A stretch of DNA of 64,000 bases from Tubulanus polymorphus (GCF_964204645.1 NC_134030.1:18188210-18252209); one strand, 5' to 3'; positions 6,001-41,059 are shown, numbered from the stretch's first letter. Program-made: numbers and translations. Notes: generated from the letters alone by a model not told the origin.

Positions 6001-6184
6001 TCGTTTCTGACGTCATGTTGCTATGTTACGACACAAACATATACACGAAGTATGATCTTTAAAATGTGTATTTACTACATAATAACGTTTACATTAGGCC
6101 TACAAATTATTGTCCCCCATATAAACCAAGTTGCCTAAATAGCATCAGCAATCTCATTTAATTAACCTTTTCTTGTTTTTAGGC

Positions 6185-9112
6185 ATGGATCTTTGTCGAT
6201 TGTGTGGAAAAAATTCGAAACCTCCGGATCGTCGTCCTATCGATAAAAATAATTTCCAAAGCCATGTGAAGGAGTTGTTCAACATTGATTTTGATGATGA
6301 TACTGAACAGTACCCGATATATATCTGCAATATGTGTCGTGTAAAATTACAAAAATGGCGTAAGAACAAAAACGTTAAAAAAACTGTCCCTGTGACTATC
6401 AAATTAAAACAATGGACATTCGATTTATGTTGTGACTCACCCCTGCGTAAACTATGTGATGCAGCAGCACAGAAGACAAATTTTAAGAACATCAGCTCTC
6501 CGAACAGCCCTGTGAATACGTACGCTTTTTCCGATAAAGGCATACTGCGGCAAGCAATTTTAGAGGCTGATCAGACGTTGCGTTTATTCATTTCAAATAT
6601 TGAGGTTACATCATGCATTAATGGTAGTGTGGATGAGAAGTTTGTGTTTTTGCTCACTGCAGGAACCTGCCCCGGTAATCCCGATTTTAAAGATGTTTGT
6701 GAGAAACGCTGCAAGGATGGAAAAACACAGTTTTATGATCAGGCCGGAGCAATTATTGCTCAAGATATTTCAAGATGTGTCCAGTGGCGTGGTGAAATGT
6801 ATGATAGGACTGTTAGTCACTTGCATTGCATTCTTGCTTCATCAGATTTAGAAATTAATCAACAGTGTGCAGCATGTAAAGATTTCCGAAAATCTTTGCT
6901 CGTGATGAGGAAACGTCACGTAACCAATAATTCAAGAACTGATGTGTCAAGTACAACTAGATTGGATTATTTGACACATAGTGAAGCTATAAAACGTTTG
7001 CGAAATACACAGAGTGATCGACAAAAAGTTCTGCGTACAAATGCTGCTCTGGAAAAGAAAATATCGAAACTTTACAGAAGAGAATCAGTCTTATTAACTG
7101 AAAAACATTCCAGTCTTTTTCATAACATCATCCAGCAAAATCAGGACAAATTCCAGTCAGATTTTCCTACGGGCTCAGTCCAAGAATTACTCTGGAAGCA
7201 GCAAGTTCAACAGTGTAAAGGACCCACAACACAAATGCGATGGCACCCATTAATAATCAAGTGGTGTATCGCCCTACAAAAGAAAAGTCGTGGGACTTAT
7301 GATTTTATCAGAAATTCCGGTTTCATCAAATTACCTCATCCATCAACTTTAGACGACTACATAAAATTCACAAAACCGAATCCCGGCATCAATTTTGACC
7401 TTATTGAACGTGGACTACAGAATATTGGATTTGATAAACTCGAAGATTTTCAGAAAAACGTTGCGCTATTGTTCGATGAAATGAAAGTTAAAAGTGATCT
7501 TGTGTATTCGAAAAGCAGTGGTGAACTTATAGGATTTTTTGACATGGGTCCCGTCAACAACATTATGGAGACCTATAAAAGATCACTTTCCAACAAGAAA
7601 GAACCAGAACTAGCTACACATGTTTGTGTATTCATGATCCGTGGCCTGTTCAGTAATTTGAAGATGCCCATTGCATATTTTCCTTGTCAAGGATTCAATT
7701 CGCACAACTTATACCCCTGCGTTTGGGAAGCAGTCGAAACATTGGAATGCATTGGATTCTACGTAAGGGCATTTGTGAGTGACGGGGCAACACCTAACAG
7801 GAAATTTTACCGTATACATGGGCAAAATAAAAATGGTGAGCTGACCTACTTTACCACTAACAAATATGACTTTTCGAGGAAAATTTTCTTTGTGTGTGAC
7901 GTGCCTCATCTGCTGAAAACGACTAGGAACAACTTGGAAAATTCTGGATATGGAAAGAAAACTCGCAATTTTGTGGTAAGTACTAACATAATGAATATGA
8001 ATAGTAATTCTACACTAAATATGTAAATTAAGTATCATGCAATATTTCTTTATATTTTTCAGTACCAGCATAAACCACTGAAATGGACGCAGGTTATGTC
8101 ACTAGTAGAGAACGAATATGGCTTAAATCGGGCTGCACCAGGTTTAAGGCGTCTGCATAAGTTAAGACATGAACATGTCCATTTAACACCAGCAACTAGA
8201 ATGCGAGTAAATCTTGCTGTACAGGTTGGTATAAAACAAATTTTTACTTTTCATTTTTTGTCCTTACATCTTTGTTTTATTTAAATTGGCTTCTCTTTAC
8301 TGACTTTTAGGTCTTGAGTAATTCTGTTGCAGTGGCTCTCGAAATGCAGAATAATCCTGAAAATGAATCACTCGTACTCTTCATTAAAAATATGAATAAA
8401 TTCTTTGACTGTTTGAACGTCACCACCATTAATGATGCAGCTCGAACAAAGAACAGAAATTTAGAGAAATACACCTCAGCATATGATACAAGGGTTGAGG
8501 TAAGAAATTGTTAATTCCATTGAATAAATGGTAATGGATTGAGAATAAAAATTCTTAATTAATATTGACATTTTTTTCATTTCAGTGGCTAACTGAGGAA
8601 TTTATTCCTTTTCTTGATGATTGGCAGGGCGAATCTGCACATTATGAAAATCTCAACAAAAAGGAAAGATCGCAGAAATGCATGAGCTGGGAAACCCTCG
8701 AAGGATTGTGAATTACCGGTAAAGGCGCATTATTTAAGTAGCCGTGCATAAAGTATGTACATCTACGAAAAGTATATACCATGACTCATGAGCTTTTAAT
8801 TTTTCAGTTTGTTCTTTCGCCGAGTTGCTGAAAGTTGTGTTTAGAATCCCAGGAGTAAAATACTTTCTCAGTGAAAAACTCTGTCAGGATCCCTTGGAAG
8901 AACATTTTTCAAAACAGCGGGGATGTGGAGGTGCTCATGACAATCCTACTGTGCATGCATATGGACACAATGAAATATCTTTGTTTGTCGCCAGCGAGTG
9001 CGCTAAAGCCTCTCCTTCAGGAAATTTTAGAGGAAAACGGCAGGAACACCAACAGATAGATGCAGTTGATGACACACCAATTCCTCGAAAAAGAAAACGG
9101 GTGGAGTTCTGA
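6185..9112 (+). pseudogene. P-element/THAP9-family transposase, 5 exons, one premature stop
   Basis: Exons 6185-7975, 8063-8224, 8311-8499, 8586-8718, 8808-9112 (GT-AG, phases consistent). P-type motifs: RWHPLIIKWC...KLPHPSTL, LLFDEM (D), FVSDGATPN (D), CDVPHLLKTTRNN, RMRVNLAVQVLS, FFDCLN, QDPLEEHF (E)...DNPT. In-frame TGA at 8709-8711 (LEGL*IT, probably CGA>TGA). Confidence 0.92.
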
Positions 9113-9244
9113 GTGATAAGTGAAAAGACGATTAATTGCAAGACGTAAATTTTTATTTATTATACACTGACATACATGTTCATGAGTATGATTGTAATAT
9201 ATCGCACACAATTTTGTATATACAATTGGTAGTGTCACCATGTT

Positions 9245-10459
9245 TTAACTGTTGGTGTTTTCATTCAGAGTTGCTAGCGCCTTTCGAAGTGCCTTTTCAC
9301 CTTTGCGTGACACTTTAGTGGATTTGTCCTGTTTTTTAATGAATATGTATGCATCTTTGAATGCATTGATGCGTATGTCGACCCAGTAGCACAAAACACG
9401 ATGCAGGAGACTTTGGCACAAATCGTCATTGTCGACTTTACGCACTAAACATTGCCACAAATAATTTACAGTTATACTTTTTTCCAACTGATCTACTAGC
9501 TTGGAACGTACGTTGGCTCCAATCAATCTATCTACCTGTTTAATTTGCAATTCTGGTCGTATAATATTCTCAACAGTTTTGAAAAATATGAACACATCAT
9601 CACGAATGGTAAACAATCCGCCACGATTAATTTTTTCCACCCAATGACTCGTATATTCAAAATAGCTTTTAGCTTCGATTTTTGAATCATGTTTTATCCG
9701 CCAGGTTTCTAGTAGACTGATGAACGATTTGGCGGTTAAATTCTTCGGGAATTTCTGATAATGTTTTACGAGTGCATATGGTATATAACCTGCAGTGTAT
9801 CGCAGCGCCTGCTCCTCCTCGATCGTTAATTTCGCGATTGTTCGGCCATTTGTTCGGTCATGGTGAAATTGGTCCTCGATCATGTACTGAAAGAGGATCT
9901 TCATAGTAAATTGCAAAAATATGTTAACGGCTCTTTCATTTACTTTGTCAATTTTACATTTACTGAATATCTCCATCGTATAATATAATAGTTCGATTTC
10001 AGTTGTCGCAACATGAAACTTTGCCCACATTTTATCCAAATCTTTCGCAGTGCTTAAGTGAATGGCGGAACATAATGTATCTTGAATTTTTGTAAACCAC
10101 TGATTAATTCCAAGTCTGGACGGCGACGTATTTGTAGACAAAATTTTATCGATCGATTTTCCATAATGTACTGCTGCCATTCCATTTGAACTGAATTTAA
10201 ATACTCGATGGTTAATCACTTCAGTCATAGCCTTTTCCAAATATATAGTGTTCCTGCGAAAATAATAATAATGATTATTATTTTAACATGTACTTATCTG
10301 GATTTTTATATTATGTTTATATATTATTTTCTGTATTCGTTTATTATTTTATAACCTAAAAGGATTGTATTGATTATAAAAATAAATGTAAAAAATACCT
10401 GTATGTGTGTTTTCTCGTGTTCAGATCGCAGTCTCTGGTCAGCTGAGCCTGAGAAGTAC
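9245..10459 (-). CDS. Second gene of the P element, resembling the P-transposase C-terminal domain
   Basis: Main exon 10253-9245 plus a phase-compatible exon 10459-10399; the 5' end near 10550-10685 is uncertain. Motifs EQALRYTAGYI, WVEKINRGGL, YWVDIRI and a basic tail. Confidence 0.8.
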
Positions 10460-11637: not shown

Positions 11638-14600
11638 ACGTTCGCCCAGTGATAACTGATGCAGCGGGGAATCATTTAATGAATTATGAGGTGAAATTGA
11701 ATGAAGGAGAATCAAAAACTTACACGTGTAAACACGATAAAGGGAGAATAAACTGGAAATATCTATTAGAAAATGATGATAGGTGGAAACATTATTCATC
11801 CGGGAAACGATTAATAATCCGTGGAAATATGACACTCAACAACTCACAGTTCAGATGTTTCTACAATATCGGAAATTCCGTGAAAACGTTAGCAAATTTT
11901 TTAAAAGTAACAGTTATTCCCAAACCTAAAACTACACCGGGTGACCCTACTGGTAAGTGTAAAAGGCGGGATAGCAGTTTATAGATCCCCCTATGACGTC
12001 ATTAACACGATTAAGCATGTTTAAATGTATCATGTTTCTAGGCGCGGCTCGGAGCTGGAGGCGAGTAAACGACACGACTGTTTATATATACAATTACGAT
12101 GTGAAAACAACTGTCTCGTGTAAATGTGGTGACGATGACGCAATACATGCTATTAGACTAACCGGAAACACGTGGTCTATTCAGATCCCCGATAAAACCT
12201 GCACGTATAAATGCACTGATGACTTAAATATAGACATCGAAAACAAAGGTTTGTACATGATTATTATTCTGAATATATAGTTCTCGAATGGCCGCTAGGA
12301 GTGCTGATTTGTTTATGTTTTCAGATGATACTGGTCGATATTTCAAAAACTGGCGAGTTGAAGGTCGAGTGGTGAAATGGACCGCGCAACAACCTGGAAT
12401 CATGTTCAATGTTGCCCATCGTTTTAAAGCTAACAATCGATTCCTCAGCGACGGAAATGTCGTGAGCGAAGCTGTTAACGATCAAATGAGTTTAAATTTG
12501 ACGTTTCCGACAAATATGACCGGAAAAGTGGCAGTCATTGTGAAATTCACGTGGAAACATGGCGCAACAACCCGCAGCATGGAAAGAGAATTTACCTTTA
12601 AAATCGGTAAAGATGGCAGCACTGTCGTGGAAAATAGCGAAACAGGTAGGAGTAAGAGTTAGAATGCTGGGCACTAGGGGGAACTAGTACCTATCTACTA
12701 ACAGTTAAAAGTTGCGGTAGTTGAACAACCATTAAAGCGTAAAACACAAAATTTAGCATCATTTTTCATCATCAGGTATAAAACAAGGACTGCTTTGATA
12801 TGACTATTTCTATTTCAATCACCACATGTCATAATACACTTTTTTTCAACTGGCCCGAACGTCCTAGTGATGTCACAGCCTTTACGGCTCTGTTCAGGTC
12901 CCTATAATCGAACTAATAGTGGTAGAATTGTCAACTGTTAGACGTGAGGTTCAGAGATCGAAGCCTGAATTCTTTTTCATTTTTCGTTTCAGACAAAGCA
13001 AATACTGATCCACCAAAGGTGAGTATCTAGTTGTTTTATTCTATAGATAGTCAAGTTGGATGTCAATTTATTTAGTTGTTTTTTTTTAAATTATTTTGCA
13101 TTACATGCATTTCAAGTTTATATTGTATACTGCGGCCGCATTGTATACAGACTTTCTTGTCAGTGACAATGCGATATTTACCATAAAAGCAATTTGAAAC
13201 TTAATTTCAATTCATTTGTTTTTATTTTGCATAACATGTATTACAAGTTTAGTATAGAATCTTACTTTGGGAGATATCCGTGAAATATCAAACTTCATTA
13301 TCCTATCACTTTTAAGCTTTCAAGCCTCCAATACCGACCAGAATGGCCTAAAATTGTCTTTAATTCCTACCATTTTCCGGGGTAGGTCCCCAAAACCCCT
13401 GTCAATGGCTAACGCGCTCGTGAGGCATGGATACAGTTCACCCAGCTCTGGCTAGGGTTGCCTCCACAAAAATCCCCGTCGCTCTACGATCTTAGTCTAA
13501 CATCAGACACTCGGTGAAGGATAAAGCAGCCCGTAATATTGAGTGCCCTTATGCGATTTGGAACACTCTTGATCCACGCCTAATCCTGTCGTTATTTAAA
13601 CACAGTATATAAGCTATTTGCATATAGGATACAACGTTTTAAATCATTACGGGTTGAATATTGTTGATGATCGCAGTAACAAATATGCGATTAAATGGTC
13701 GTTCGTGATAGTAATTTAATCATTGTTATATCTTTCAGACTACATCGGACCCCAATCACTGGATTGTTATCGGCCTCATATTCTCATACATCGTTGGTGG
13801 AGCGGCTGGATACTTTTTGATCGTTGTTATCGCTGTTATTACTATTCGCAGGTATGAACTCGACATACCCTCCCTCCTCCCGGTATGAACTCGACATACC
13901 CTCCCCCCTCCCGGTATGAACTCGACATACCCCCCCCCCCGTGTTGATAGGAAAAACCCACAGTTGTTATACTTTGACGGTTTCGAAGTGTTGACTAAAC
14001 TTCAGCTAGATCTAAGTCAATCTCCTTCTTTCGCCATCGATATATATTTAACTACAACATCGAATTCGTTATAAGTTGAAGATGAAAAGTCAGTAAGTCT
14101 GGATGATGATAAAAATCAAACCGACCGGTGGGTTAATTTAAACAGTTAACGATGTTTACTTTTAAAAATAAATGCCGGGATCGCGAGATCAGGACTCGAA
14201 CCTAATGTGCACAACGAGTTTTATCGAAGAGAGTCTTGTGTCTGTGTCAAGACTTTTATGAAAATCAGAGCTTAAAAGAGAGCACTCAACGTAATACCAT
14301 TTGTCCTTAAAATGTTTGGTTGTACGTTTGGCACCAATTGTGGAATTGTGCAAAATCGGTACTAGATTTCTGTTATTTTGCAGTTCACAACCTTTTCGAA
14401 ATACGTTGAAATAAACTGTAAAAAATGCTGCATAAATTACACATTTCAGATGCAGACGACGTTCGTCCGGTGAAGGTCATGTGGATACTTCAACACAACC
14501 GCAACAGCTTGAAACCGGTGAAGGTCATGTGGACACTTCAAAACAACCGCAACAGCTTGAAACAACAAATGACGAGTTGAACATCTACGAAGACCCGGAC

Positions 14601-16102: not shown

Positions 16103-16943
16103 TTGTTTTATATCTGATGATGGAAAATGATGCTAAAATTTGTGTTTTACGCTATTATGTTTGTTCAACTACCGCAACTTTTAACTGTTAGTAGATAGGT
16201 ACTAGTTACCCCTAGTGGCCAGCATTCTTACTCTTACTCCTATCTGTTTCGCTATTTTCCACGACATGAGTGCTGACATCTTTGCCGATATTAAAGGTAA
16301 ACTCTTTTTCCATGTTGCGGGTTTCTGCGCTAAGTTTCCACGTAAATTTCACAATAACTGCCACTTCTCCCGCCATATTTGTCGGAAACGTCAAATTTAA
16401 ACTCATTTGATCGTTAACAGCTTCGCTCGCGACATTTCCGTCGCTGAGGAATCGATTGTTAGCTTTAAAACGATGGGCAACAGTGAACATGATTCCAGGT
16501 TGTTGCGCGGTCCATTTCACCACTCGACCTTCAACTCGCCAGTTTTTGAAATATCGACCAGTATCATCTGAAAACATAAACAAATCAGCACTCCTAGCGG
16601 CCATTCGAGAACTATATATTCAGAATAATAATCATGTACAAACCTTTGTTTTCGATGTCTATATTAAAGTCATCAGTGCATTTATACGTGCAAGTTTTAT
16701 CAGGGATCTGAATAGACCACGTGTTTCCGGTTAGTCTAGTAGCATGTATTGCGTCATCGTTACCACATTTACACGAGACAGTTGTTTTCACATCGTAATT
16801 GTATATATGAACTGTCGTGTCGTTTACTCGACTCCAGCTCCGAGCCGCGCCTAGAAACATGATACACTTAAACATGCATAATCGTGTTGATGACGTCATA
16901 GGGGGATCTATTAACTGCTCTCCCGCGTTTTGCACTTACCAGT
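16103..16943 (-). pseudogene. Truncated inverted paralog of the Ig receptor gene (two exons plus introns)
   Basis: Reverse-complement match to about 11949-12786 with scattered substitutions. Both candidate donors of the second exon are altered (GT>GC, GT>AT). Cut at 16943 by the transposon end. Confidence 0.9.
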
Positions 16944-17264
16944 TATGGAACGCGATTCATGCAATAAACATGACCATTGTTACGACGTAGGATAATTGCT
17001 GCGCCGTAGTATATTTGCGTCGGTGTATATTTTCTCCGACGTAGGATAATTGCTGCACCGTAGTATATTTGCGACGTGTCTACTTTTCATCGCATCTATT
17101 TCGCTGCGACGTGGGTAGTTTGTAACGACGTAGCTTATTTACGTGAAGGTTCCATAGTTCACCGTATGGTGGCGCCACGGTATTATATATTCAATAAAGT
17201 TAGAATTTAATTGAATCATATCGCTCTTTTCGACGCAACATAGTACGCCACAATCCGAAACTTT

Positions 17265-20200
17265 ACGGATGCAATTCTTTCCGAGTTGAAACTTGATGAA
17301 GTAATAGAAACATTCCGGAGGGAAAATGTAAGGATAACTATTCAATATAAGGACAATAAGCCCATCCATCCACATATATACATAGGCCTACCACTTACCA
17401 CCAGTGTCGAGTGCCGCCGCCGGCGGACGATACGTTGATGGATCTGGATGGATGGATCGTCGATATGGAGAAGATCCAGACCATATCGTCGCCCGGCACG
17501 TGCACCCACTCCCGGACGATCGTCTCCTGTTGATGGAAATGAATTGTGATATGTTAAGATCATTTTATTATTATAATGACTAATGACAGGCTAGGCAGCT
17601 TTACAAGCCTGAAGTAATGTCTTGTGACGTGTAATAAGGATGTAAACTAAGTGCTCTTCTGGCTCTGGTATTTCTCAATAACCGGGAGCAACATTTTTCC
17701 AGGCGCAGAGTCTAGGCCTACTCTCTCGAAGCGGTAACATAATTGGGCTCACAGCACAAGCGAGATAATGTGTTTTGCAGAATATTTTCATTATCTTATT
17801 CAGGTAACTCCAGCAGCTGTCGTAGCAATGCTCGACACTGACCTCACCTCCATGGGAGTAACAAGAATGGGCGATCGAGCACTCCTGAAAGTGAAATGTC
17901 GGCACTTTATATCATCAACTAGTGTTAATCGTCCAAGTGAGTAAATGGGAATTTACAATCATAAGTTGTAATAACGAGTACCAGTACTAAACCTATGCTT
18001 TAAATTTTTAGCTGTACCTATTCCGTCCTATGACATAGGCAAGGAGAGGAAAACTTTATTTACATCAAAAAAAAAGGATCCGAAAAACAAGTCGGCTATG
18101 ATGAAATAAACTTTCTTTTGTCTAGGCAATCCTGACTGTGTAAGTTATAGATTTTCATTCATATACCAGCAGTTCAGACATTGAAAAGTTAATAGGCCTA
18201 TTGTAAAGCTGTTTTGATTAAAAAATACCAAAGTAACTGTACATTGTATAACTCAAGTTAATAACTTGCTTTTGCAGAAGTTATCTTCGAATTATCACTA
18301 ATACGATCTGTTTCAATAATGATTTTATTTCATTGCTTCCAGATGGTTATTCCGCATGACAGGGAAAGTAGACTTAGCCTGATACAGTCAGGATTGGGCG
18401 AGAAAACATTGGAAATAGAAAAAGATTCAACATTCATAGAACTTCGAGGTAAATTGTTCGAAGTGTTTCCACAGTTGTCCACCGGTGGTGGTTTCGAGTT
18501 TCTTGCTGCCACGGCAAATAAAATGTTGGAGCTGCTTGACATTGAAAGCAGCTCCATCACACCGTATGCCTTGAAGAGCCTTGTGGCTCGAGGAAAAATC
18601 TATATTCGCCCCATACAAAGAGAGATATTGTCGCAAACTACTCCAAAGGTGAGTCAATGAACTATTTTCTGCTGTTCTTATAAATGATCTTAAGTATGAA
18701 TAAAATTTGTTTCTGGTTGTAGGCGGAATCAGTGAAAGAAAAGTGCTTGAAATGCGATCAGGAATTTCCACTCTCTTTGTTGAGGGAACACACTGAAAGC
18801 TGTGACGGGTATATATTTTTTCTTATTACAACGAACTTCACAGGACCAGAAAATCAGAACCCAGTTCCACAGTTGTGAGTTAAGATTTGACTCTGAGTTA
18901 AAACATTGAAAATGAACTAATTTTAACTCTAACTCACTACTGTGGAACCGGGTCCTGTTGGTTAAAACCAGTATAAAATAAATTTGTCTTACTTGGGTCG
19001 CAATTCTATATACATGTATGTTATCCGTATCTGATGAATTGATTTATTGTTTGTTATGATGAGGATTCCACTCTACAGATGAGAGGAATTAAATTTTTAA
19101 ATATTATTCTTAAATCGCTAGTTTGATCGATGATCTACCGAAGATTTCAAATGCTGCTGCTGCTGCTGTTGCTGCTGTTAAGAGGAGCATTTCGTCTGTA
19201 TGTATAGCTTGTAATACACACGTACATTGTAACAAGATGTTTCAGATTGCAGGCAATAACAGTTTATTATGTTTGTTGTATCTGCTGAATTAAAAAGTAC
19301 ACTCACTAAATATTTTATCAGTGATAAGTTTTCTATAATGGACCTAAGGATTATTATTATTATGGATTACAGACAAATGATGCAGAAACAAATCCTAAAC
19401 AAGTTCGGCCTAATTCAGCCTACAATTTCCACAGGTACGTTTCTTCAGCAGCTATATTCCACATTCGCTGTATATGGTGATGTTGATGTATGTTTTACAA
19501 TTCATCATCAGGTGTCAATACTACCTACCATACATGTAAATGTAAGATATTTAATGCATTATTAGTTTCATAAAAAGCCGAGATGATTGTCTTAAATGGC
19601 TTGCTTCTTCCCAGCATCCTGGACACACCCTCTGATTCTTGTACTAAATTAGCTTATATAAAATGCATAATTGGTTTTATTTTAGGCACCAGGAGTTTAT
19701 TGATCTTACTACCGATTTAGATATGATGTTTCCAGATGATGACAGTGATGCAGATTTGAATCAGGCAATTGCTAACAGCTTAGCCGAGGTGGTGGAACCA
19801 CAATTGAAAGAGGAACGGTAAGCCACGGTCGTAAACTTTTCACTGTCAACGTGAATTGTATTAAACTCAGGAAATTGAAAAACTATATTTTCTTGCATTA
19901 ACATTCATAGACAATTTCCTATCAGCTTTTCACGATGCCACATTCACACTTGTCATGGATAATCCAAATTTATTTTACAGTTACGGCATCATTATCTAAA
20001 AGAACAAAGGTAGTAGCATGGATATATTTTTGTTACCCAGTCTATATTCAGGTCTCTGCTTTTTATATGTCTATGTGTACTTTCTTAGGCTATCGGTGTG
20101 TAGATTTATTATATATGGTACATGTACATGCTTTCCTTCTCAATGGGGAACCCACAACACCAGCTATCTATGGAACGCGATTCACCCACCAGATGGCGAC

Positions 20201-22431
20201 AGGTCTTCCGTTCTCAAAATCAGTTCATTGAATTTCATTGAACTGAATTTTTAGACTCGCGAATCCGTATACTATGCAAATATGCAATAAATTCATTCTT
20301 TTACTTAGGTATCGGAAAGATAAGAGAAAAATTCATTCAGATTTAATTAATCGAAATGTGGAAGAAATTGAACGCGGACGACCAACTATCTACCAGCGAA
20401 CCTGGCGGATCCTCGCCTGCCATGAGTGGAATCCTCGATTGCCGCAGTAGCGGTGTGTGGGTGCCCCATACACTCTAACCCTAACCAAAAAAAGTATTTG
20501 TTAACATTCACAAAAGCGACTGTAACCAAGTTTAAATCACATCATTATGTTGCACTTCATTAAGGTCTTTTCAATTTATTTTCAAAGGTTAAATATAGAA
20601 TGAAATATTTTCACTTTAGGGATGGCCGTTCTCTTGAGGTTATCGTAAAAGACCACGCTGCCAAGGTAGTTGAACAAGATTCCGAAGAGACATTGAGTTT
20701 CACGTGTAGAAGAAAGTTTATCTTTAAAGATGCCGTTGCTAAGCTGAAGAGGACGAATTCTTCAAAACTAACCAAGCCTGTTCAAGTGACCTTCTTGGGA
20801 GAGGCTGGAATTGACAATGGTGGTCCTCGAAGGGAATTCCTGGAATTAGTCATTTCAGAGGCTGCTAGATCTCCGCTTCTTGTTGGGCCAGAAAATTCGA
20901 GATCACTGAGTCATGACTTGGTAGCTCTGGATAACAGATCTTTTTTTCATTTTGGCCAGTTAATAGCTTTGAACCTTATTCATGGCGGGGCTGGGGCCCG
21001 CTTTTTTAATTCATTAATTGCCAAAATTATCCTGTACGAGAAGTATGATGCCAAAACAATCGTTGTCGAAGAAGTGCCTGATGTCGATTTACGCAAAAAA
21101 CTACAACAGGTGTAGTATTCATTGATTTTTTTAGCCCATTTGTACTGAAGTCCTAGTGGGCTGTTGCATTCACTTTTTAACCCACTTGGGCTATTGCTAA
21201 TTCCTCGACCTGTAGCTTCCTAATGAGTTTCAAGCTCATTGATTTGTATATGTTTACCATGATGTTGAATATTGAATTGTCAAATTGTCAAGCATTTCAC
21301 AAAGTAGGCATGGTTTCCCTGGACTCTCAGTTCAAGAGTTTGTATTCGGGTTCATTATAAGACAGTACTAATACACTTTTGATTGTTTCAACTTTCTTTT
21401 GCAGCTAAATGAGATTTGTGACGAAGCTGAATTGGTGAAATTTGTAGATGAAAATCTAGAATGTCGCTTTGAAATGGGCTTTACAAAACCCTCTATTTTC
21501 ATAAAATTGTCCGACAAACAAAAGATAGTAGAGTATCTGGCCTTGAACTCCCTGGTTCACCGTTCAAAATCAGAGCTAAACCAACTTCTAGAAGGTTAGT
21601 ATTTTACAGTTTAGCAGTAGAATTTGCGAATGCAGCTATATTACATTTCGGTCTCAGCTTGGGTTTAAGGTTGTTTTCTGTTCACGCAGAGAGCTCGGTA
21701 CGATTCTGTTCATTAGGGCTACAATGTTTGAATTCTTGTACATCTTATGTTATGCAGGCATGTCGACTCTCGGAGTTCTGGATCTCATCCGCAAATTCCC
21801 CTCATCATTCGAAAAGGTCTTTAGTGGGGCTCCAAGTCCAATGTCCGTAGACTACATGACACAGTTATTTCATGTTGATTACTCCCCTCCTGGATCAAAT
21901 AAGAGGGTAGAAGAAGAACAAATTATCATGAATTGGACGTTCTTACTCGAAGAATCATTTGGTAGGTTTAAGCACCTCCTGGTGTTATCATTTATACATC
22001 TACAGTCAAAATCCATTTTAAGGCTGCTATTCTTTTTAATTTCACTTTTATTTTTCACAGAACAAACTTATGTAACAAAATTATTATTTCTCTCCATTCT
22101 GAACGTGATAATTGAAACAAACAATGAGTTATTTTCATTAAATTCTGTTACAGAAGGCAATATCAAGGAAAAAACAGATGTTGGCGAGATGACCCTGTCC
22201 TTGGAGGATATTCACATGATTGTCACAGGATCTTCTCAGAAACCAATAATAGGTTTCCACCACAAGCCTAGGATCGAGTTCAATCATAGTGGTGATGGAT
22301 ACTTAGTACATGCCAATACTTGTGCCATGGTAATAAGACTTCCAGTGAATAAAAAGATGCTTGAGGTTAAAAGTTTTGTCAAGGAGATAACATTTTGTAT
22401 ATACAATTCCCCGGGATTTGGATGTATATAA
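17265..22431 (+). pseudogene. SAM - UBL-like - UBZ - UIM - HECT E3 ubiquitin ligase (G2E3-like HECT), ~715 codons, 12 exons
   Basis: Exons 17265-17327, 17804-17936, 18012-18139, 18343-18648, 18723-18808, 19122-19197, 19373-19434, 19686-19817, 20620-21109, 21405-21594, 21758-21961, 22154-22431; all phases consistent. SAM (DTDLTSMGVTRMGDRALL), CLKC...LREHTESC, UIM (DADLNQAIANSLAE), HECT (VTFLGEAGIDNGGPRREF, catalytic HANTC, terminal GFGCI). The start codon reads ACG and there is an in-frame TAA at 18107-18109. Confidence 0.88.
18858..18955. mobile_element. Palindromic MITE (same family as 52672-52780) in a HECT gene intron
   Basis: ACCCAGTTCCACAGTTGTGAGTTA...TAACTCACTACTGTGGAACCGGGT inverted ends. 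Confidence 0.7.
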
Positions 22432-22563
22432 AATGATTTTATACATGCATTCATTTTAAATGGATATTCGAAGTAAATCAACATGAAATCCTCATGACAC
22501 ACATCCCATTTGTTTGTATGTTTTATTTACTATGTATTAAGTCGGATAATAGTCCTAGAATCT

Positions 22564-22791
22564 TTACCCTTTAAAGCTCAAAGCACCCTTTTTGTCAATA
22601 GCTAGTATGACGGTGGTCGGGAATTGGGCCTGATCCCTCACGAATATAAATTCCGTCCCCGCCCAGCATACTGGTTGTTGACTCTTAAAAGTGCCCCCTC
22701 TTGGAATTTATCAAAGGCAGGTGATGGGAAATGTGCCATCATACACTCACCTTTGATATATCCCTAGAGTGGGCCAGGCTTTAAAGGGTAA
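22564..22791. mobile_element. Small MITE-like element
   Basis: 14-bp perfect inverted repeat TTACCCTTTAAAGC / GCTTTAAAGGGTAA. Confidence 0.5.
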
Positions 22792-23049
22792 CAGGTTCAA
22801 GGGAAAACCGGTCATTGAATTTGTCAGTCAAGGTTTCAGTTCAATCATATTGATATCGAAAGGCTTGTTGTGGATTGACAATTAACATTCCAGTTTATGA
22901 ACTTATGTTTTATTCATAAGACTACTTCGTTATTCATTTATTCAGTCCATTAAGTTTTTATATTTTTTGAACAAATAATACATAAAATTGGTGTTTCAGA
23001 TAAACGATTCAGCTGGTTTCTATCTATATACAGTCAAGTCTACAGTCGA

Positions 23050-23359
23050 CAGTCAACTCCTCTTAATCCGTAGAAGTGGGACCTGGCAAAATCATACGGA
23101 TTAACTGAAAATACAGATTATTTGAAAATTCTCAGAATATTAATACCTGGCCTAGTATAGGCAGGAAATAGCTCTTAAGGGGTGTATTATTAATTTTTTC
23201 ACTTGTAAATTGATTACTTCAGCATTAATACGGATTATTTCATACGGATTAACTGAATAATTTATTAAGGATTTGAACAAGAAAAAACGGGACTTTGAAA
23301 TGACTACGGAATAATTAAAAATCCGGATTAATGGGATCCGGATTAAGAGGAGTTGACTG
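23050..23359. mobile_element. Tc1/mariner (pogo/Tigger-type) MITE
   Basis: 21-bp perfect TIR CAGTCAACTCCTCTTAATCCG. TA follows the right end; the left flank shows a TACAGTC stutter. Internal CGGATTAA repeats. Confidence 0.8.
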
Positions 23360-23363
23360 TATA

Positions 23364-25928
23364 TTACAATAATAAATGCAGGAAAGCTTGTCGGATTTCA
23401 ATATAAGCATTTTTTCCTAAGTCATGTTCTGTTTCCATTGAACTTCTTGACAACTCTTGGAACACTGGTAGATCTGCTTCATCTATGGGACATGGAGTTA
23501 AGGGCACCATAACTCTCTCGTGATCATCCAAGTTAGCTGCCATTAGTTCCTAAATGAAAGAGAATATAATTGGCACACATCATTTTGAGCTCAAAACTTG
23601 TATTACCAATTTATACAGAATATGATTATAAATAAATTAACTGAAAAATTATTCTACTGAAAAAGTTGTGCATGTGTTTTTTTTTTCGCTTACCAAATGA
23701 TCACCAACAGGAGGGCTGCCTTGGTTTTCACCTCTTAACCATAATTGAAGCGGTGACTGACCCACTGTTCTGACCTTATGACATATCCAGGCATCAATAA
23801 AGCGATTAATGCTGTTTTGTAGGCGGGGTAGAAAAACCATGTGCAAAACATACAGGTCAACGTCATTGTCTGCTATCAGTAAACCTTCTTCTTCTAGTGA
23901 ATGAAATAAATTATAGAAGGTAGATGTGCAGAGAGAATACACATCGCGCCAAAGTCTTTCTATCCGTTGATTGTGGACACTGCAGCCAGTAATAAAATGC
24001 CCAGGGCCTCTGTCAGGATGTGCAATTATGTAATCAGCAATTAAGACATTTTCTCCACCGTGGTCTGATCTAACTTTCTGGGGTAGCCCATATCTTTCGA
24101 CTGCATTTTTGAAACTCCTAAAAACTGTATCTGCTCTATTGTTGTTGCTACATCTCATAAAGACAGGAATCCGAGAAAATCCATCAATTCCCCCATGAAT
24201 TACTATACGCCATCTGAAAATTCAATAAATGTTATCTTTCAATGATATTGTTCATACAATGTATTACTAATATCCATGTAACAATAATGCTTTCTTAATT
24301 ATTGTTTGAAATACACATGAACTTCTCGTCAAAGGCTAAATATCGTGAAATCATTTTGGATAGAATACTTCATTTTGATATTTTTCAAATACATCGAGGA
24401 AATATTAAGTGTAAGTGACAAAAATCTATACCTAATCAACTTATGATTGCCATCTACATGCCATATAAAATTTGGCCCTGGAACCCAATATTCTCTTCTC
24501 TTCAGTGTTTTCCGTTTCCTCTCATCGATTCCATCTGGGTCGACCCGTCTTAACGACTCCCTTATCCGGTCACGCTGAACTCTAAGGCCTAAACTTTGTA
24601 TGTGGCCAGCATGTAGCTTTTCTCCCCAATTAGGATGAATGGCTACAGCATCTGCCACGATGTCATCAAGAATATCATCTGCAAATAGAAAAATTATGCT
24701 TTATTTGCTAGTAAGAAATACAGTAGACTCCGCCTAAACCAGTACAGTTGGGACTTTAATTTTTTCCACCGAATTAGGCGTTTACCGGTTTAAAGAAATG
24801 CGAAAACCAATGTAGCTGTATTCAGATATCATAGGTGATTTACAAGACCTTACCCACCTGATAATTTATCTGACATATTAGAGACGCGAAGTCCAAATTC
24901 CATAACACGTTGAGCAATAGTTCTTTCACAAACATTGAACATAATGCCAATCTCTTTATAAGTGAATGTATGTAGAATAAGATATTCAAGACTTTGATAT
25001 GGTATCTCTCTTTTAGGTCTTCCACGAACCATTGCTGAAATTTAATTATCTAGCATCAGATTAATAGGAAGAGAAGACATACGAGTATGACTAAAGGGAG
25101 CATCTCAAAATTTCGATAGTTACTTCAATTAGAATAACTGTCTAATTCTTTCTAACCCCCCACCCCACCCTTTCAAAGTTGGAACTATTGATTTTCTAAT
25201 GAGAAACCACAGACAAAGATAAAACATTCTAACGAGTGTATTTCGCAATTATCACAACTTTTAATTGAAAAATAAAATAGCAAAATTACAAGTGAAAAAC
25301 CTATTAAAGCCTAATAGACTTTTATAAACAAAATAAAATACATCTAAAATATCAACAGCATCTAAACGAGAGACGGTTCAATTCAATGTTATCTTTATTG
25401 CACCACAATAAATCGATAGTTCGGCAGTGGTGATGAATCCGCGGGAGGCCTTTACCCCCCCCCCCATCCCCTTCCGCGAGTTATTCTAATTGAAGTAACT
25501 ATCAACATTTTGAGATGCTCCCTAACTGAATATAATCAAGCAATCTCATCTCATTATTGGCCATTGCCTCAAATTGTTGAGCAAGAAATAATTTCAATAT
25601 TATGACATACCAACTTCTCGTGGAACTGGATTTTTGCACTTGTCTATCAGTAAGACTCTGTCGCCAAGATTGTGGACTCCTAATTCCACAAGCTGTTCAT
25701 GAGAAATATGCTTTACGATATCAATATTTACCTACAACAAAATGGTTAAAAATAAAACAATACTTTTATCTAGCGGTAATATTATCATTTGAATTGGTAA
25801 TATCCCATGATCCAGGAACCCATACACTCTCTGATATTCGGACTACTACTACTACTACTACTTACATTTTCTTCTTGAAATCTTTCGATTAGATGGTGTA
25901 GATTAAGTTCTGAGAGTACGACATTCAT
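23364..25928 (-). CDS. SAM-HTH-integrase-core (rve) DDE transposase, 437 aa, intact
   Basis: Exons 25928-25866, 25731-25611, 25034-24858, 24678-24432, 24213-23694, 23549-23364 (1314 nt, no stops). GRP+HTH (KEIGIMFNVCERTI), WHVDGNHKL (D), HGGIDGFSR, VRSDHGGEN (D), NQRIERLWRD (E). Confidence 0.92.
25095..25523. mobile_element. MITE in transposase intron 2 (possibly Harbinger-like)
   Basis: ~45-bp TIR AGGGAGCATCTCAAAAT(T/G)T(C/T)GATAGTTACTTCAATTAGAATAACT at both ends. Confidence 0.75.
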
Positions 25929-28900
25929 TGTATTGGAATTTGCGCGGAATTTGCCATTTGAGCTCAGACCACTATTCCAAAATCTTCTATATCCTATAGT
26001 AAAAACAAGAAATTCAAACGTTTAGTTCACATATAAGCGCGTAAATTCAGGGGAAATCCTGCGTATGCCTCATAGGCCAGCATCTTAGCTACGCATTTAA
26101 GTGGTTTTCGCCCCATGTACCCAACCTAACTTTTGAAATAATCAAACCTTTAGAAAGGAGGGGTATCCCAGTACAGGTATGCCAGTACATCCGAGCCAAA
26201 TATCTAAGGGAATCCCCCACCGGGTTTGGTACCCTTACTCCAAGCAAAAAAAGTCCAGGGAATCCCTTATTTCATCATCAATCTGTCTCTCAGGACCAAT
26301 GGATTTCATACATATAACCGAAATTCGTTACCTATCCCATTTGCAGAATTATGGCAACATTTATGGAGGACCTCTTTTTCATTTTAGGTACCTAATTGTG
26401 GTCTGATGCCATTTGCTCAACAAGCAATGGGGAATGGACCATGGGGAATCCCTGAGTGTTGCGTCGAAAAGAGCGATATGATTCAATTAAATTCTAACTT
26501 TATTGAATATATAATACCGTGGCGCCACCATACGGTGAACTATGGAACCTTCACGTAAATAAGCTACGTCGTTACAAACTACCCACGTCGCAGCGAAATA
26601 GATGCGATGAAAAGTAGACACGTCGCAAATATACTACGGTGCAGCAATTATCCTACGTCGGAGAAAATATACACCGACGCAAATATACTACGGCGCAGCA
26701 ATTATCCTACGTCGTAACAATGGTCATGTTTATTGCATGAATCGCGTTCCATAACTTCTGTATATGGATTCTGACGGTGATGGTTCGAGGTACTATCATC
26801 ACCCCTCCCTTCCCATGATAGTAGACCGAGCTATGCCCGCCAATCTACGACCAAATTCGGTTTTTTGAAATATTATACAGTGTAATTGTGTAACTGAATT
26901 TAAGCCTAGATGAAATACAGTATAACTGAATTATAGTGTAGATGAAATACAGTGTAACTGAAGCTAAGTGTATCAATTTAAATTCAATTTCAATTTCAAT
27001 TTATTTCAGAGTAAAGCGTAGCATTGTAGAGATTAAAAACAGTGAAACTGAATTGGTGTACCGTAGTTGAAATATAATTTGTAACTATATCGAGCAGAAA
27101 TACATTCAGTGGTGTACATGTAATTACTTTTTGCAAAATTATCAGTGGTATTTCTTTCATCCCTTAATCTTACATTGTATCACTGTATTTTGATTAAAAT
27201 ACAATGTAACGAGTTAACAGTTTAACTATATAACAATATATCTTAAGTTAAAAAATGTGCTTTTTATTTCATTTGAAACAGTTTTGTAAAACAAAAGATT
27301 TTTGGACTTAAGGACCACTTTGGACCACTTTCGGACTGGCCCCAAGCTGGTAAAGATGTGCTGCTAGAAATTGCTAATAATGTAACGTGATTATTTTATT
27401 CGCTTAAATAAAAAGAATTTATCTATAGAGATGTTCTTGTGTTAACTGCAGCTGGGGTAAAATGAAGTGAACAGCGTTTTCTGGTGGAGGATAAGTCACA
27501 AATTAAAAACAACCTACAATTTCTTTTAGAAATATTTTTTAGAGTTGATTCCATATTTTTCTGAGTTTAAAAAATGGATAAATATTCTAATATATAAAGC
27601 ATTAGTATTCAATTCTCAAATCAATTTGATGGATTCAAAAAATTTATAAATTTTATGCATGGTGGAGAATGGATTGATTTTAGTAGAAACCCGCAGTTTA
27701 TAGAGGGAAGATTGACATATGTAATTCACTGATCTCAGTGAAACGCGACACTTGGTTGTTCGGCCATTATTGTCTTACGTGACGCTGTACCATTCACCAC
27801 GAAGTTACCGCAGTGTTGGTTACACTAGAATCTTAGAGCGCCGCAGATCTCTCTGTGGAGACAACCTCACTGCCAGGACTGGGTGTAGATTGTACCATAG
27901 ATCTGTTTTACCACCGGTACGTATATCTTCACATCTAGAGGTGTTTGTTCATCTTCTGCAAAATCAGACAAAATATCTATACTTACCCTTTGTGAATATG
28001 TAAGATCAACTAAATACAAGATGTAACTTGATAAAGGTGAGTTATTGAGGTTTTAATTTCTACTGCATGTGTTAGAAATATCCTCTCTTCTAGAAAGCGC
28101 TGCTACAAACACTCTGAAAATGTCTTATTCCAGGTAATTGTCACAGACTAGTTTTAGAAGTAAAGGCTATCTTAACATGAAAGTGAAACTCTGCATGATC
28201 AGGATTAGAGGGCGGTGATGAAATATCAAAATATGTCTGTCACAGGGATGGACAGAGACTGCTCATCTATTGGTTAAACACATTAGAAATGAACTACATT
28301 GTACATTGTAGGTATTGTACATACTACAATGTTCTTGTATCGAGTCAAATCCTGACGGCAATTTTTTCAGATGAGCTCTTCTTTCCTCAGGATCTGGATG
28401 CTGCCAATACGAGCTGACGAAACCAACCCGACCGGATAGATAGGTGGTGAGTAGATGACCAGATCATAAAGTGTTATATGTATCGAGTAAGATTAAAAGT
28501 TCTAATGGTGATCGTTACGTTTTTATTTCAGATCCAGCTCTTCTTCCTCAGGACCTGATTGCTGTCAATCAGTGCTGACTAAACCAACGGATACTAAATT
28601 AGTTGACTTCACACCTTCCTCACTTCTTCGGGACCTGATTGCTGTCATACTGGGCGTATTAACTGCAGTTTAAATGTGCACGGTCCGATAGAAGATGACT
28701 CCCGTGGAAAAGATAATCCAGAAACTGCTCACATTAATTCGGTGAGCAGACATTTTAACTGTTTGTGGTATATAGGAAACACTTCATCAATGATACAACG
28801 CAACTATTTGACTAGGTTTAAATCACGTTTCAACCACGTTTTTCAAAACGGTTGTTTATTTGATTCCCAGAGAAGCTTCAACTGTTTTCAAACGCTTAAG

Positions 28901-31732: not shown

Positions 31733-33558
31733 ATGGGAAATGACAGAAATAAACTTTGTTGTTATGGATTGTGCAATAACGATGGTCGTTACCCAGACAG
31801 ACCAGCGATGCAAGGAGTTTTTTTCATAAACTTTCCGAAACCGAAAACTCAACTTGACAAATGCAAGCGATGGATACAGTGCTGTGGTCGACCTCATGAT
31901 CAGTTCAATGTGACTAAGATTTCAAAAAACACGTTCATATGCAGCAAACATTTTGTTGGGGGAGAGGGGCCAACTTCAGATCACCCTGATCCAATACCAG
32001 CAACAGCAACTACTGACCAGGTAAAGTACTCTTATTATTATGAAAATATAAGTACATAAACTGGGCCTCTATTGTTCTCATAAATGGCAAATGATAAGTA
32101 GAAATCGTTAGCAATGAATTCTTAACATTTCAAAAAAATAATAATTAACTTCTGATTATCATATTATTATTCAAGGTGGAAAAATTCTGTCGCAAACGTC
32201 GCAAGGCCCCTACACCTCGTGGATCAAGTACTCCGACGAGTAAAAGGAAACGACTAAATGATGAACGAGATGCTGCTTTAAGTCTCCTAGATTTGAGTTC
32301 TATTATAACAACCCAATCTGAAATTAATGACGCTGAAGTTTCAGCCCAAGAGTTTTTGGATTCATCGGTAAATTTCTAATATAGGGCCTATCCTATTTAC
32401 CTAAGTAACTTCATATGCATGACTGATTTTAATGGGCAAAAACTTTCTGAATTCCAGATTAAGACTGTGGGTGCGCAGACAGATCCTGTTTCATGCAGAC
32501 CTTGCGTTGAAAGGAATGAAATTGGAGTTCAGACTATTTATTCAAAATATGAACTGCAATCAAAAATTAGCACTATAGTTATGAAAAATAACCTCAATAT
32601 TTCTCAACCATCAAATTTATTTGTTGAGGATAATCAACCATCGTTGAGTCTTCAAAAACTGAAAGAAGACGACAAGAAAATGAAATATTTCACTGGGCTG
32701 ACGTATCTTCAGTTTGAGGCTCTTTTCAACTTCCTTGGACCAAGCGTCAATAATCTCAGATACTGGAATCGCTCTTACAAATGTGACAAAAGTCCGATGA
32801 CTTCGATGCGCAGGACAAAACCTATGGACGAACTATTTATAACATTAGTGCGATTACGACGAGGCTTTTACTTTCATACGATGTCATTCCTTTTCAAATT
32901 ATCCGAATTCAGCCTGCGGTCAATATTTACAACATGGTTACAATTTCTTTACTGTCATTTTAATGATATGCGTTCTGTTATGTTTCCTGACCGTACCGTT
33001 CTCCGTCGTTTTCTACCAAAATCGTTTAAGGGATTCAAGAATGTAAGATGCAGTGTCGACTGTACTGAATTCTTCTGTGAAATGCCTCGAGACTTCACTA
33101 GACAAGGAAATTTATATTCCAACTACAAGCACCATCACACATTTAAGTGTCTTATTGCTGTGGCCCCAAATGGAACAGCTGTATTTGTTTCCAAGTTATT
33201 TGAAGGCGCAGTGAGCGATCGAGAAATATTTGAAAAATGTGGGATTCTTGATTATTTAAATCCGGGTGATCTCCTCTTGGTGGATAGGGGATTCACTGTA
33301 CAGGATCTATTGCTCTCTAGACAAGTTGATATGAATATCCCACCATTTTTACAGGGTAGAGATAAACTGACACCACAGGAAGAATTGTTGACAAGAAAAA
33401 TAGCAAAATCTAGGATTCATGTTGAACGGTTCAATGAAAGAATGAAAAAATTTAGATTAATATCCGGTGTTATGCCACTTAGTATGACACCCTAAGCCAC
33501 CCAAGCTGTATTTGTTGCCTGTTGTCTTGTCAATTTCCAAGAACAGCTAGCAATATAG
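31733..33558 (+). pseudogene. THAP + HTH + DDE_Tnp_4 (Harbinger/ISL2EU) transposase
   Basis: Exons 31733-32020 (THAP: CCYGLC...FP...W...ICSKHF), 32176-32367, 32458-33558 (VDCTE, YSNYK, VDRGF, RIHVER). TAA at 33493-33495 precedes a conserved-looking tail ATQAVFVACCLVNFQ that ends at TAG 33556-33558. Confidence 0.88.
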
Positions 33559-33729
33559 AAATTGTACAATATAAATATGTATATATCACGTAAAATTTTT
33601 ATTTCATACATTTTAATGCAATTAACAAATCTGAAATACATGTATATTCAAAATATAAATGTACAATATATGTTGAGAATATACAAAATGAAATTATTAT
33701 ATGAATACATGCATTTATGTTCATTTATT

Positions 33730-35788
33730 TCAGCTCAGGATAAATGGGATTAGATTTCTAGGCACTCTCATTTCAAATATTTCTGGAGCAATGACAACAT
33801 TCCATAATTTCAAATTTTTTTCCATGATATCATTAATCAATTGGATATCGGGATAAATCTTTTCAACTGATGGTGGTCCTTTTGATGACCAGAGAACAAA
33901 ATCACACCATTTGAATCCAGTAACACCTAACTGATACTGGATTTGATGGTAATATTGATGGGAGTGTTTTAGCATTAACTTATCATTTTGGATTTTAAAA
34001 CACGCTGACTGAAGAATCTTACTCTTGATGCTTCCATTCTCGTAATTCCTAACAAGATCTTCTACAGAAATACTTTCCAGAATCTTGAGGATCTTTATTT
34101 CGATTAACCCATAATTATTATTTTGTGAATCATAAACTAACCCGTCGGGACTACAGGCTAGTTGAGGGTAAGTGCCGGATACCCATAGCCCTGTCTTTGA
34201 GACCACGTAATGAGGATTAACGGAAGCGTAATCCAATCTGGCTTGATCTTCGAAGTCAATGCCTCTTTGCATGTAGCTAGTTGTTATCTGATCCAAATTC
34301 CAAATTTTCTTTTTGATGAAATTTGATACCCGTCGCAAGACAGCAGAAGACCAGCCACAGTGCGTGCTTGCGTCCCATATCATGACCGCTTCTTTGGCCG
34401 TCGAAGCTGTCATTCTCATATATCTATGGGAAATCCATGTTTCGGTAACTGATTGGTCCTCTGTATTGTCTATCATTATGGAATGTAAATTTTCTAATTT
34501 TCCTGAGGGGGACAGGTTGTACTTCAATTGGCACAATAACTGGTGAAGTGTGTCTCGCCTGTCATCTGTCAAAAGGTAATCATTGTACTTATGAATAAGT
34601 ACAGTTTCCCACATACATTTGACATTTTTAGCCTGATTTGCCTTTTGTAAATCGCGCAGAAATCCGTTAATTGCTTCATCCGAAACAATCCGTTGATTTA
34701 GAGGGCGTGGATCGAAGTTAATGACCGCATTTTTGCGAGTTGATTTCGTCGACTTATAAATGGCTTCATTAATACAAGATGGTCGTTTTTTTCTGCCTTT
34801 TTTCCACTGACATGGTAGGTCAGTACACGCCGGGCTGTTTTGTCCAACATAATCCGTAAGATTAAGTAGTAATGCAGCAATATGACTGCACCTACTTGAA
34901 GCTGATGCTTTACAGTGACAACTGGCATCACGGACAGCCCCACTTGCCATTGATAAGGTCACAGTAACACTATATTCAATGTCTTTCATTGATGCCTGTA
35001 TAGTGGCTTTATAATGACAAACATCGCCTGATACCTTCACTTTGATCGGACTCACATTGTCTGATGACACATACTGACGTCCCCTTCGTAGTGACTTTTC
35101 AGTCACAATCCCTGTAAGGTTGCCATCATCATCATCATCCCCATCATCGCAAACACCAGTAACAGACAATGTTGGCATGGATTCCACTAACCAGTGGTAA
35201 GTATGTCCATAATTGAATAGTGGTGGAAGTTCTAAATTAAAATCTTTCCATCCAGTAATCGGCAGAATCGTAAAATGTCGCATTGGAGTCTGTTGACTCG
35301 TTAAATCACTCAATTTTTTTCGTACCATTTTCCTTTGTCTATCTTGACATCAATTTCAACCCCCATGGCTAACGCTTCTTTGCACCTGAAAACAGAAGAT
35401 ATCAAAAACAAGTTTTAACAACCGTTTTATATTTCATTTATGAATGTGTAAAATATTTTGGAAGGAAATTTGTTCAAAATGTTTCTAATCAGTGGATGCT
35501 CTGAATGAATATTTCAGTATAGGCCTATACCTCCTATCACTCCAAACTAAGTTATAAAACCCATCACTTTCTTCAAGTGTGATGGAATAGATAATAATGA
35601 GATATATCATCAAAATATGTAAAAAGTACTTACCGCTGGATAAGGTCTGCTCTTCTACCACTCAATCTGAGGCCTCTACATTCTAACCAGCGTTTTAACT
35701 GAACATTGGTGTGTTGCTCTATCTCTGCAGATAGTTTAGCACCCGGTACGTCATCTTCAGTTAATTTGATAATTTGAATTGAAGCCAT
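33730..35788 (-). pseudogene. SAP - SWIM - YqaJ (lambda-exonuclease-like) accessory protein
   Basis: Exon 35788-35634 is a SAP domain (QLKRWLECRGLRLSGRRADLIQR). Exon from 35385 needs a +1 shift in the A7 run at 35314-35320 to join the 532-aa ORF. SWIM (CHCKAS...CSHIAALL); YqaJ (RMTAS, GIDFE, SPDGL, IEIK, YYHQIQ). Confidence 0.87.
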
Positions 35789-40105: not shown

Positions 40106-41059
40106 ATGCTGGCTGCACCTTCAGTACCCCGCAACCGCACAAACCCCACTAATCTTTACACAGCCATCGTACTGGCTCCAACTACGATAAACGGAACTTA
40201 TCTATGGTTTTACCTCGTATTCGCCGGTCTGTGTTTTATTCTCGGACTCGTCGGTAATCTCCTCATCGTGATAGTTTTGCGGCGACGTAAATTATGGCGA
40301 CGTTCTTTTAGTCGTATGTTCGTTCAACTAGCGGTCTGCGACACTCAGGTTCTCGGCTGTTACTTCATGAAATACATCAACGTTATATCTTATACATTTC
40401 ACGGAAGGATACTGGTCAAACCGTCAACACGTATGCAATGTATACTCTTTGGTTATTTTATATCAGGTGGACTCTCGTGCAGTCCGTGGACGCTGGTCCT
40501 CGTAGCCACCGAGCGAATGTGTGTCGTTCGTTTTCCGTTTAGAGGTCCTCGTTTCTGGAGCACGGATACCGCTTCTAAACTCTGTGTCTCCGTAATATGC
40601 TTCGTAGCGCTGGGCTTTAGCTATTTACTTGTAACTATCGATGTTAGTGACAATGGTTGTGTCTATATAGATATGCCCCTGCTTACGTCCATCCTTGCCT
40701 CGATAGGTCCGTTTATGCTGTTAACCATCATGTCCGCGATAACATCTATCACGTTATTCAGAAAAAAAGGTGGCACATCGGAAACAACTCGAGCATCGAA
40801 ATACTCGAACCAGGTAACCGTGTTGGTTCTGTTACTGTGCGTCTTTTTCATGGTTACAACATTCCCGACTTTTATCATCAACCCTTTTGTCCTGAAAAAT
40901 CCAGAACTAAAAAACATCTTCGCCGTCCTCAACGATATTTTAATGATGAATTATTCGTTTAATCTCTACTTGTATCTAATGACGGGAAAAGAAATCAGAA
41001 AAGAATTGTGGAACATGATTTTCAGAAAGAAACGCAACGTATGTCAAATCTTAGTTTAA
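40106..41059 (+). CDS. Intronless rhodopsin-family (class A) GPCR, peptide-receptor/chemoreceptor-like
   Basis: 317-aa ORF with seven hydrophobic segments. TM1 GN, TM2 LAVCD, TM3 ERM (DRY variant) followed by VRFP, TM6 TTFP, TM7 NYSFNLYLY; N-terminal N-glycosylation sites. Confidence 0.9.
   Translation: MLAAPSVPRNRTNPTNLYTAIVLAPTTINGTYLWFYLVFAGLCFILGLVGNLLIVIVLRRRKLWRRSFSRMFVQLAVCDTQVLGCYFMKYINVISYTFHGRILVKPSTRMQCILFGYFISGGLSCSPWTLVLVATERMCVVRFPFRGPRFWSTDTASKLCVSVICFVALGFSYLLVTIDVSDNGCVYIDMPLLTSILASIGPFMLLTIMSAITSITLFRKKGGTSETTRASKYSNQVTVLVLLLCVFFMVTTFPTFIINPFVLKNPELKNIFAVLNDILMMNYSFNLYLYLMTGKEIRKELWNMIFRKKRNVCQILV

Follow-up and report, generated by a model that had tools for sequence, protein, structure and literature searches.

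Proteases of the Ulp1 and OTU types are known to be borne by transposons. Zisupton/KDZ transposons with an F-box have been described (PMC12062965, citing Bohne, 2012). The IS3EU superfamily is established, although its structural side is unstudied according to PMC11934779, and in fungi its elements have been proposed to use TET/JBP genes for anti-silencing (PMC12730594). The IS3EU literature that we searched, including PMC10045372, PMC6839031, PMC12730594, and PMC11934779 and not covering Repbase entries, mentions neither SAM nor HECT. A first-pass annotation of the locus described here knew of no earlier account of a transposon with SAM domains on both a transposase and a HECT E3 ligase, and this search found none. 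The superfamily is known; the layout of a SAM-transposase with a SAM-HECT gene appears to be an unreported variant in that literature.

The window, the whole stretch of DNA that was analyzed, comprises 64,000 nucleotides of the Tubulanus polymorphus genome. Positions 16944-26753 are a young DNA transposon of the IS3EU/GingerRoot type, bounded by TIRs, with the following features.

16944-17240, plus strand: left TIR, 297 bp, starting with TATGG and with subrepeats inside
17265-17327, plus strand: ligase exon 1, 63 nt, first half of the SAM, GT donor, phase 0
17804-17936, plus strand: ligase exon 2, second half of the SAM
18012-18139, plus strand: ligase exon 3, basic linker and start of the ubiquitin-like domain
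18343-18648, plus strand: ligase exon 4, ubiquitin-like domain (beta-grasp), hhalign 97.8% to the ligase family
18723-18808, plus strand: ligase exon 5, C2HC/UBZ-type zinc finger, PF18574 E 1e-5
19122-19197, 19373-19434, and 19686-19817, plus strand: ligase linker exons, the last with a UIM-like motif
20620-21109, 21405-21594, 21758-21961, and 22154-22431, plus strand: HECT exons, stop at 22431
24678-24432, 24213-23694, and 23549-23361, minus strand: transposase exons with the second helical domain and the DDE core, PF24764 E 9e-59
24858-25034, minus strand: transposase exon 3, helix-turn-helix, weak HTH matches and a match to the family profile
25611-25731, minus strand: transposase exon 2, second half of the SAM, ligase-type motif
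25866-25928, minus strand: transposase exon 1, 63 nt, ATG and first half of the SAM
26457-26753, minus strand: right TIR, 297 bp, same sequence as the left TIR

The TIRs, put at about 297 bp by the first-pass annotation, are 297 nt long and 100% complementary, and the element termini read TATGG..CCATA, which is the TAYGG..CCRTA pattern of IS3EU/GingerRoot. Five near-full copies are present in the genome with 98-99% identity (the window copy and four siblings). The 6-bp TSD of these transposons is perfect at the siblings on C5 and C3, matches at 5/6 positions at C10a, and also occurs at three relatives (L071, L077, and L089). The DDE core is integrase-like, without HHCC, and has the D, D, E motifs (PF24764 E 9e-59). 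The termini, the TSD, and the predicted DDE core are thus those of IS3EU/GingerRoot.

The window copy has no TSD (ACCAGT vs. ACTTCT at its two flanks). On the left it abuts the end of an 840-bp inverted duplication of 11949-12786; on the right, the flanking DNA matches another locus from the element edge onward. Because the duplication ends on the left and the match to the other locus starts on the right, we place this copy at a rearrangement junction. The inverted duplication (11949-12786 and 16103-16943, ~95%) carries two paralogous ORFs of 124-130 aa, and one of its arms stops exactly at the left end of the element, where the TSD is absent.

Several other features were observed. A short segment within a ligase intron (20169-20270), also found in the siblings, has TAYGG..CCRTA-like ends and is possibly a related miniature element. 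High-copy repeats lie in introns and upstream of the transposase (20349-20452, 25095-25523, which bears inverted ends of its own, and 25960-26100), and a candidate exon (20309-20446) was dropped because it overlaps a very high-copy repeat. In the C3 copy (C3:12952233-12980344), a deletion has taken exon 2 of the transposase SAM along with part of exon 1, and ~18 kb of inserted DNA separates the transposase and ligase genes. Elsewhere in the window, inspection of the ORFs by eye revealed a P-element/THAP9-like transposase gene (6173-10240) and a convergent pair resembling ISL2EU, with a Harbinger-type DDE ORF and a SWIM/YqaJ-exonuclease ORF (32419-35328). An intronless ORF at 40106-41059 resembles a seven-transmembrane receptor.

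The transposase model has six exons with predicted splicing (437 aa, GT-AG introns, no internal stop) in the order SAM, HTH, second helical domain, and PF24764 DDE core; when the exons were joined and the frame and stops counted, the frame of the window copy was intact. The convergent ligase has twelve exons, again with predicted splicing, and ~715 aa, ordered as SAM, basic linker, ubiquitin-like domain, C2HC/UBZ finger, linker with the UIM-like motif, and HECT. The N-terminal peptides given by the first-pass annotation were recovered for both proteins, as was its observation that each gene opens with a 63-nt exon, followed by a phase-0 intron that interrupts the SAM: in both, including transposase exon 1, the first exon ends at a GT donor, at SAM position 21. 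The UIM-like motif of exon 19686-19817 is absent from 120 relatives and has no Pfam match.

The assignment of the second gene to the HECT ligases, with a catalytic Cys, is borne out by matches to Rsp5/E6AP (E 2e-5 to 1e-4) and, on the last exon, to PF00632 (E 5e-4). The Cys codon lies at 22321-22323 and a Phe stands four residues from the protein end (-4 Phe); both residues are retained in the nine ligases compared (9/9). The model of a relative folds on the UBR5 HECT at Z 20.8, and that of a ligase-family member matches the TBK1 ULD and talin F0 (Z 7.2-7.7).

The gene models were searched exon by exon, not as joined exons, and in these single-exon Pfam searches SAM_2 on transposase exon 2 (E 6e-4) and SAM_1 on ligase exon 2 (E 0.09) both fell below the cut-off (20.3 bits vs. 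a cut-off of 20.5, and 13.5 vs. 23). The SAM exons of both genes scored clearly on SAM profiles built from relatives. For the uninterrupted relatives P0065 and P0336, SAM models with pLDDT >90 matched the tankyrase SAM at Z 8.8 and 10.0, and relatives' models matched the tankyrase, Shank3, and BICC1 SAMs at Z 8-10. The models of these relatives thus assign both N-termini to the five-helix SAM fold, in agreement with the original proposal. In one relative, the model places the SAM and helical domains upstream of the DDE core.

In its charge pattern, the ligase SAM is acidic in the mid-loop region and basic in the end-helix; the mid-loop and end-helix are the classic polymer surfaces of SAM domains. 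In the large clade of relatives described below, the key residues of both SAMs are invariant. In the SAM codons, pN is far below pS (0.03 vs. 0.16 and 0.15 vs. 0.54), and on this codon comparison the SAMs are under purifying selection.

The ligase of the window copy is damaged. The T with which its protein had been said to begin is a lesion: a private net deletion of 50 nt took the ATG, which is kept in 4/4 siblings. Codon 98 (18107-18109) is a private nonsense codon, and a sense codon in 4/4 siblings. Judged by these changes, this ligase is a recent pseudogene and cannot function. As had been expected, the four siblings checked keep the HECT gene. Every sibling bears a ligase frameshift and a transposase lesion particular to that copy, so that the ligase is broken in 5/5 copies and 0/5 have both genes intact; some of the indels lie within A-runs, where an assembly error is possible. 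In collapsed sequencing contigs, the HECT frame is open. Since most lesions are not the same from one copy to the next and these contigs show an open HECT frame, the data point to descent of the family from an intact, active ancestor. The ligase lesions, differing from copy to copy, would have arisen after insertion.

To what extent does the layout recur? Among the 45 full-length transposase representatives nearest to the core of the window transposase, only P0065 has a SAM (1/45), and nearly all the others begin with an unrelated, apparently helical domain. In the P0065 clade, 112-114 of the 119 transposases among the homologues listed bear a SAM, including proteins of Hydractinia, Desmophyllum, Pinctada, Crassostrea, and Mizuhopecten. 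On the ligase side, a SAM is present in 51-57 of 81 close ligases. The SAM+SAM layout was found at five loci besides the window family (jellyfish-like, Desmophyllum, Crassostrea, and two metagenome contigs); a convergent gene with SAM, ubiquitin-like domain, and HECT is present at L071, L072, L077, and L089, and in part at L094. L071, L077, and L089 have TIRs with TATGGAACGC ends like those of the window copy, and perfect TSDs; in L071 and L077 the start codons lie ~0-30 nt from the inner TIR end. All SAM-transposase loci long enough to judge have a convergent SAM-ligase, save L076, a TIR-bounded, internally deleted copy without it. As controls, L105 and L107 have SAM-less transposases with convergent SAM-less HECT ligases, and none of the loci compared combined a SAM-transposase with a SAM-less ligase. 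This matched/unmatched comparison sets about two lineages against two, so the co-occurrence is not statistically independent.

The predicted SAM is on both proteins, and the layout is conserved across phyla. Its retention in worms, corals, jellyfish, and oysters suggests that the two proteins work as a pair. No relative was found in viral contigs. IS3EU elements L106-L118 came from bacterial and archaeal genome bins of sponge samples; these look like mis-binned contigs of the animal host.

Whether the two SAMs co-occur across metazoans was a question raised by the first-pass annotation. The paired layout does occur in other phyla, but in this genome roughly a dozen loci have a SAM-HECT gene opposed by a diverged IS3EU transposase for which no SAM exon was detected, a result that is a lower bound for SAMs in these families, which were mapped by coordinates. 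In some families, then, a SAM on the ligase goes without a detectable one on the transposase, so the two may not have to occur together. C8:3174596-3180019 with seven similar loci, and C2:9568076-9576586 with two, each have a SAM-HECT gene facing a diverged, intron-rich IS3EU-like transposase. The SAM-less ligases (L105, L107, and P0353-P0384) begin with a predicted amphipathic helix, and a helical domain opens their transposases; these may be an alternative docking pair.

We consider that the element encodes a two-protein machine, with co-expression from twin TIRs, SAM-SAM docking that brings the ligase to the transpososome, and ubiquitination there of the transposase product complex or of nearby chromatin factors, and we give this reading a probability of about 0.5. 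The family has TIRs, TSD-forming insertion, a predicted DDE transposase, and a convergent HECT gene model whose catalytic residues are intact. Because the start of each gene lies at the inner edge of a TIR, the identical TIRs are probably twin promoters that co-express transposase and ligase. The transposase HTH would bind the TIR subrepeats, and its SAM would dock head-to-tail on the ligase SAM and so bring the HECT to the transpososome. There, with the UBZ holding the ubiquitinated substrate, the ligase would modify nearby proteins, most likely product-bound transposase, or chromatin or silencing factors, and this local ubiquitination would let transposition complete. ClpX remodels MuA, and the ligase step would be a eukaryotic analogue. 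The two-component system proposed at the outset draws support from the SAM pair, the HECT gene of the siblings, and the recurrence of the layout. Against it stand the nonfunctional ligase of the window copy, which would have been dead since insertion, and the HECT cargo, which is not specific to SAM elements; the SAM-HECT loci without a detected transposase SAM, the L076 copy that lacks a SAM-ligase, and the finding that none of the five copies in this genome has both genes intact also weigh against it.

The origin of the SAM pair bears on a second explanation. The large clade has two SAM subfamilies, old and distinct, one on the transposase and one on the ligase (about 46-52 bits apart). In the window copy, the transposase SAM is instead ligase-type (28.7 vs. 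14.4 bits), and its two SAMs have in common an intron that is missing from the uninterrupted SAMs of relatives. Each of the two first exons is the near-best match of the other, the transposase first exon being closest to its partner's. In the tree of homologues, the core of the window transposase is placed outside the SAM clade; a single clade of SAM-transposases is not rejected (AU test, p 0.63). A separate origin of the window transposase SAM, by convergence, is offered as a lead only. The pattern fits a copying of 5' exons between two genes that both start at the TIR edge, and the pairing may have two origins, in one of which the ligase SAM exons were copied onto the transposase.

It is conceivable, at rather long odds, that each SAM oligomerises its own protein (for end synapsis in the transposase, for a polymer or condensate in the ligase), and that the two are alike only through TIR extension or 5' gene conversion that copied the first exons. 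The shared intron, the ligase-type SAM, the first exons, and the TIRs that extend to the start codons in relatives all agree with this. However, the second exons of the window are not especially close to each other, the copying route accounts for origin and not for retention, and the SAMs of the large clade have diverged into separate conserved types yet are still paired.

HECT genes are also faced by the transposases of L100 and of several families of this genome, and related HECT genes adjoin hAT-like and other transposon genes (L103 and L104). By this distribution, HECT cargo occurs in animal IS3EU generally and is not special to the SAM elements. The ligase SAM could bind host SAM proteins (Polycomb Ph/Scm, L3MBTL, and SAMD1 types) for degradation as an anti-silencing effector, with the transposase SAM secondary. 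SAM-HECT genes are indeed commoner than transposase SAMs in this genome, and anti-silencing cargo has a precedent (PMC12730594). We think this unlikely, as it leaves unexplained why SAM-less transposases are paired with SAM-less ligases, and the closest solved SAMs are those of tankyrase, DGK, BICC1, and Shank, not Polycomb. That the ligase is a captured host gene without a role for the element is highly improbable: GingerRoot elements do capture gene fragments (PMC6839031) and none of the five copies in this genome has an intact ligase, but the lesions vary by copy, the transposases are broken equally often, and the recurrence of the layout, the conserved catalytic residues, and pN < pS largely refute it.

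Extending the two-protein machine, we tentatively propose, as something somewhat doubtful, that animal IS3EU elements generally encode a dedicated E3 ligase coupled by matched N-terminal modules (SAM/SAM or helical/helical, depending on the lineage), that transposition needs its ubiquitination, and that the SAM pair may have arisen twice. A conserved design of transposase and E3 would be a testable handle on the remodelling of eukaryotic DDE transpososomes or on escape from silencing. On this view, many genes that are annotated in corals, molluscs, and worms as "uncharacterised HECT/SAM" would also be cargo of transposons and not expansions of host gene families.

The SAMs of these elements resemble the SAM polymers and heterodimers of tankyrase (PMC4980433) and of Eph-effector pairs (PMC5993539) in their five-helix fold (Z 8.8-10 to the tankyrase SAM in models of relatives) and differ in being part of a mobile element, with a putative interaction. 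The fungal TET+ IS3EU elements (PMC12730594) share the superfamily, the ends, and an enzyme gene facing the transposase, but their cargo is an alpha-kinase (on the opposite strand) and a dioxygenase, not a ligase, and no shared interaction domain is reported there. The Zisupton/KDZ F-box elements (PMC12062965) and the Ulp1/OTU transposons likewise place ubiquitin- or SUMO-system domains on DNA transposons; those domains either form one protein with the transposase or act as adaptors or proteases, whereas the window element has a full HECT ligase as a separate gene with a matching SAM. The IS3EU/GingerRoot elements (PMC10045372; PMC6839031) are alike in the TAYGG..CCRTA termini, the 6-bp TSD, and a PF24764 integrase-like DDE core that follows helical domains and not HHCC; unlike them, the window element has a SAM at the start of both proteins and an E3 ligase as its second gene.
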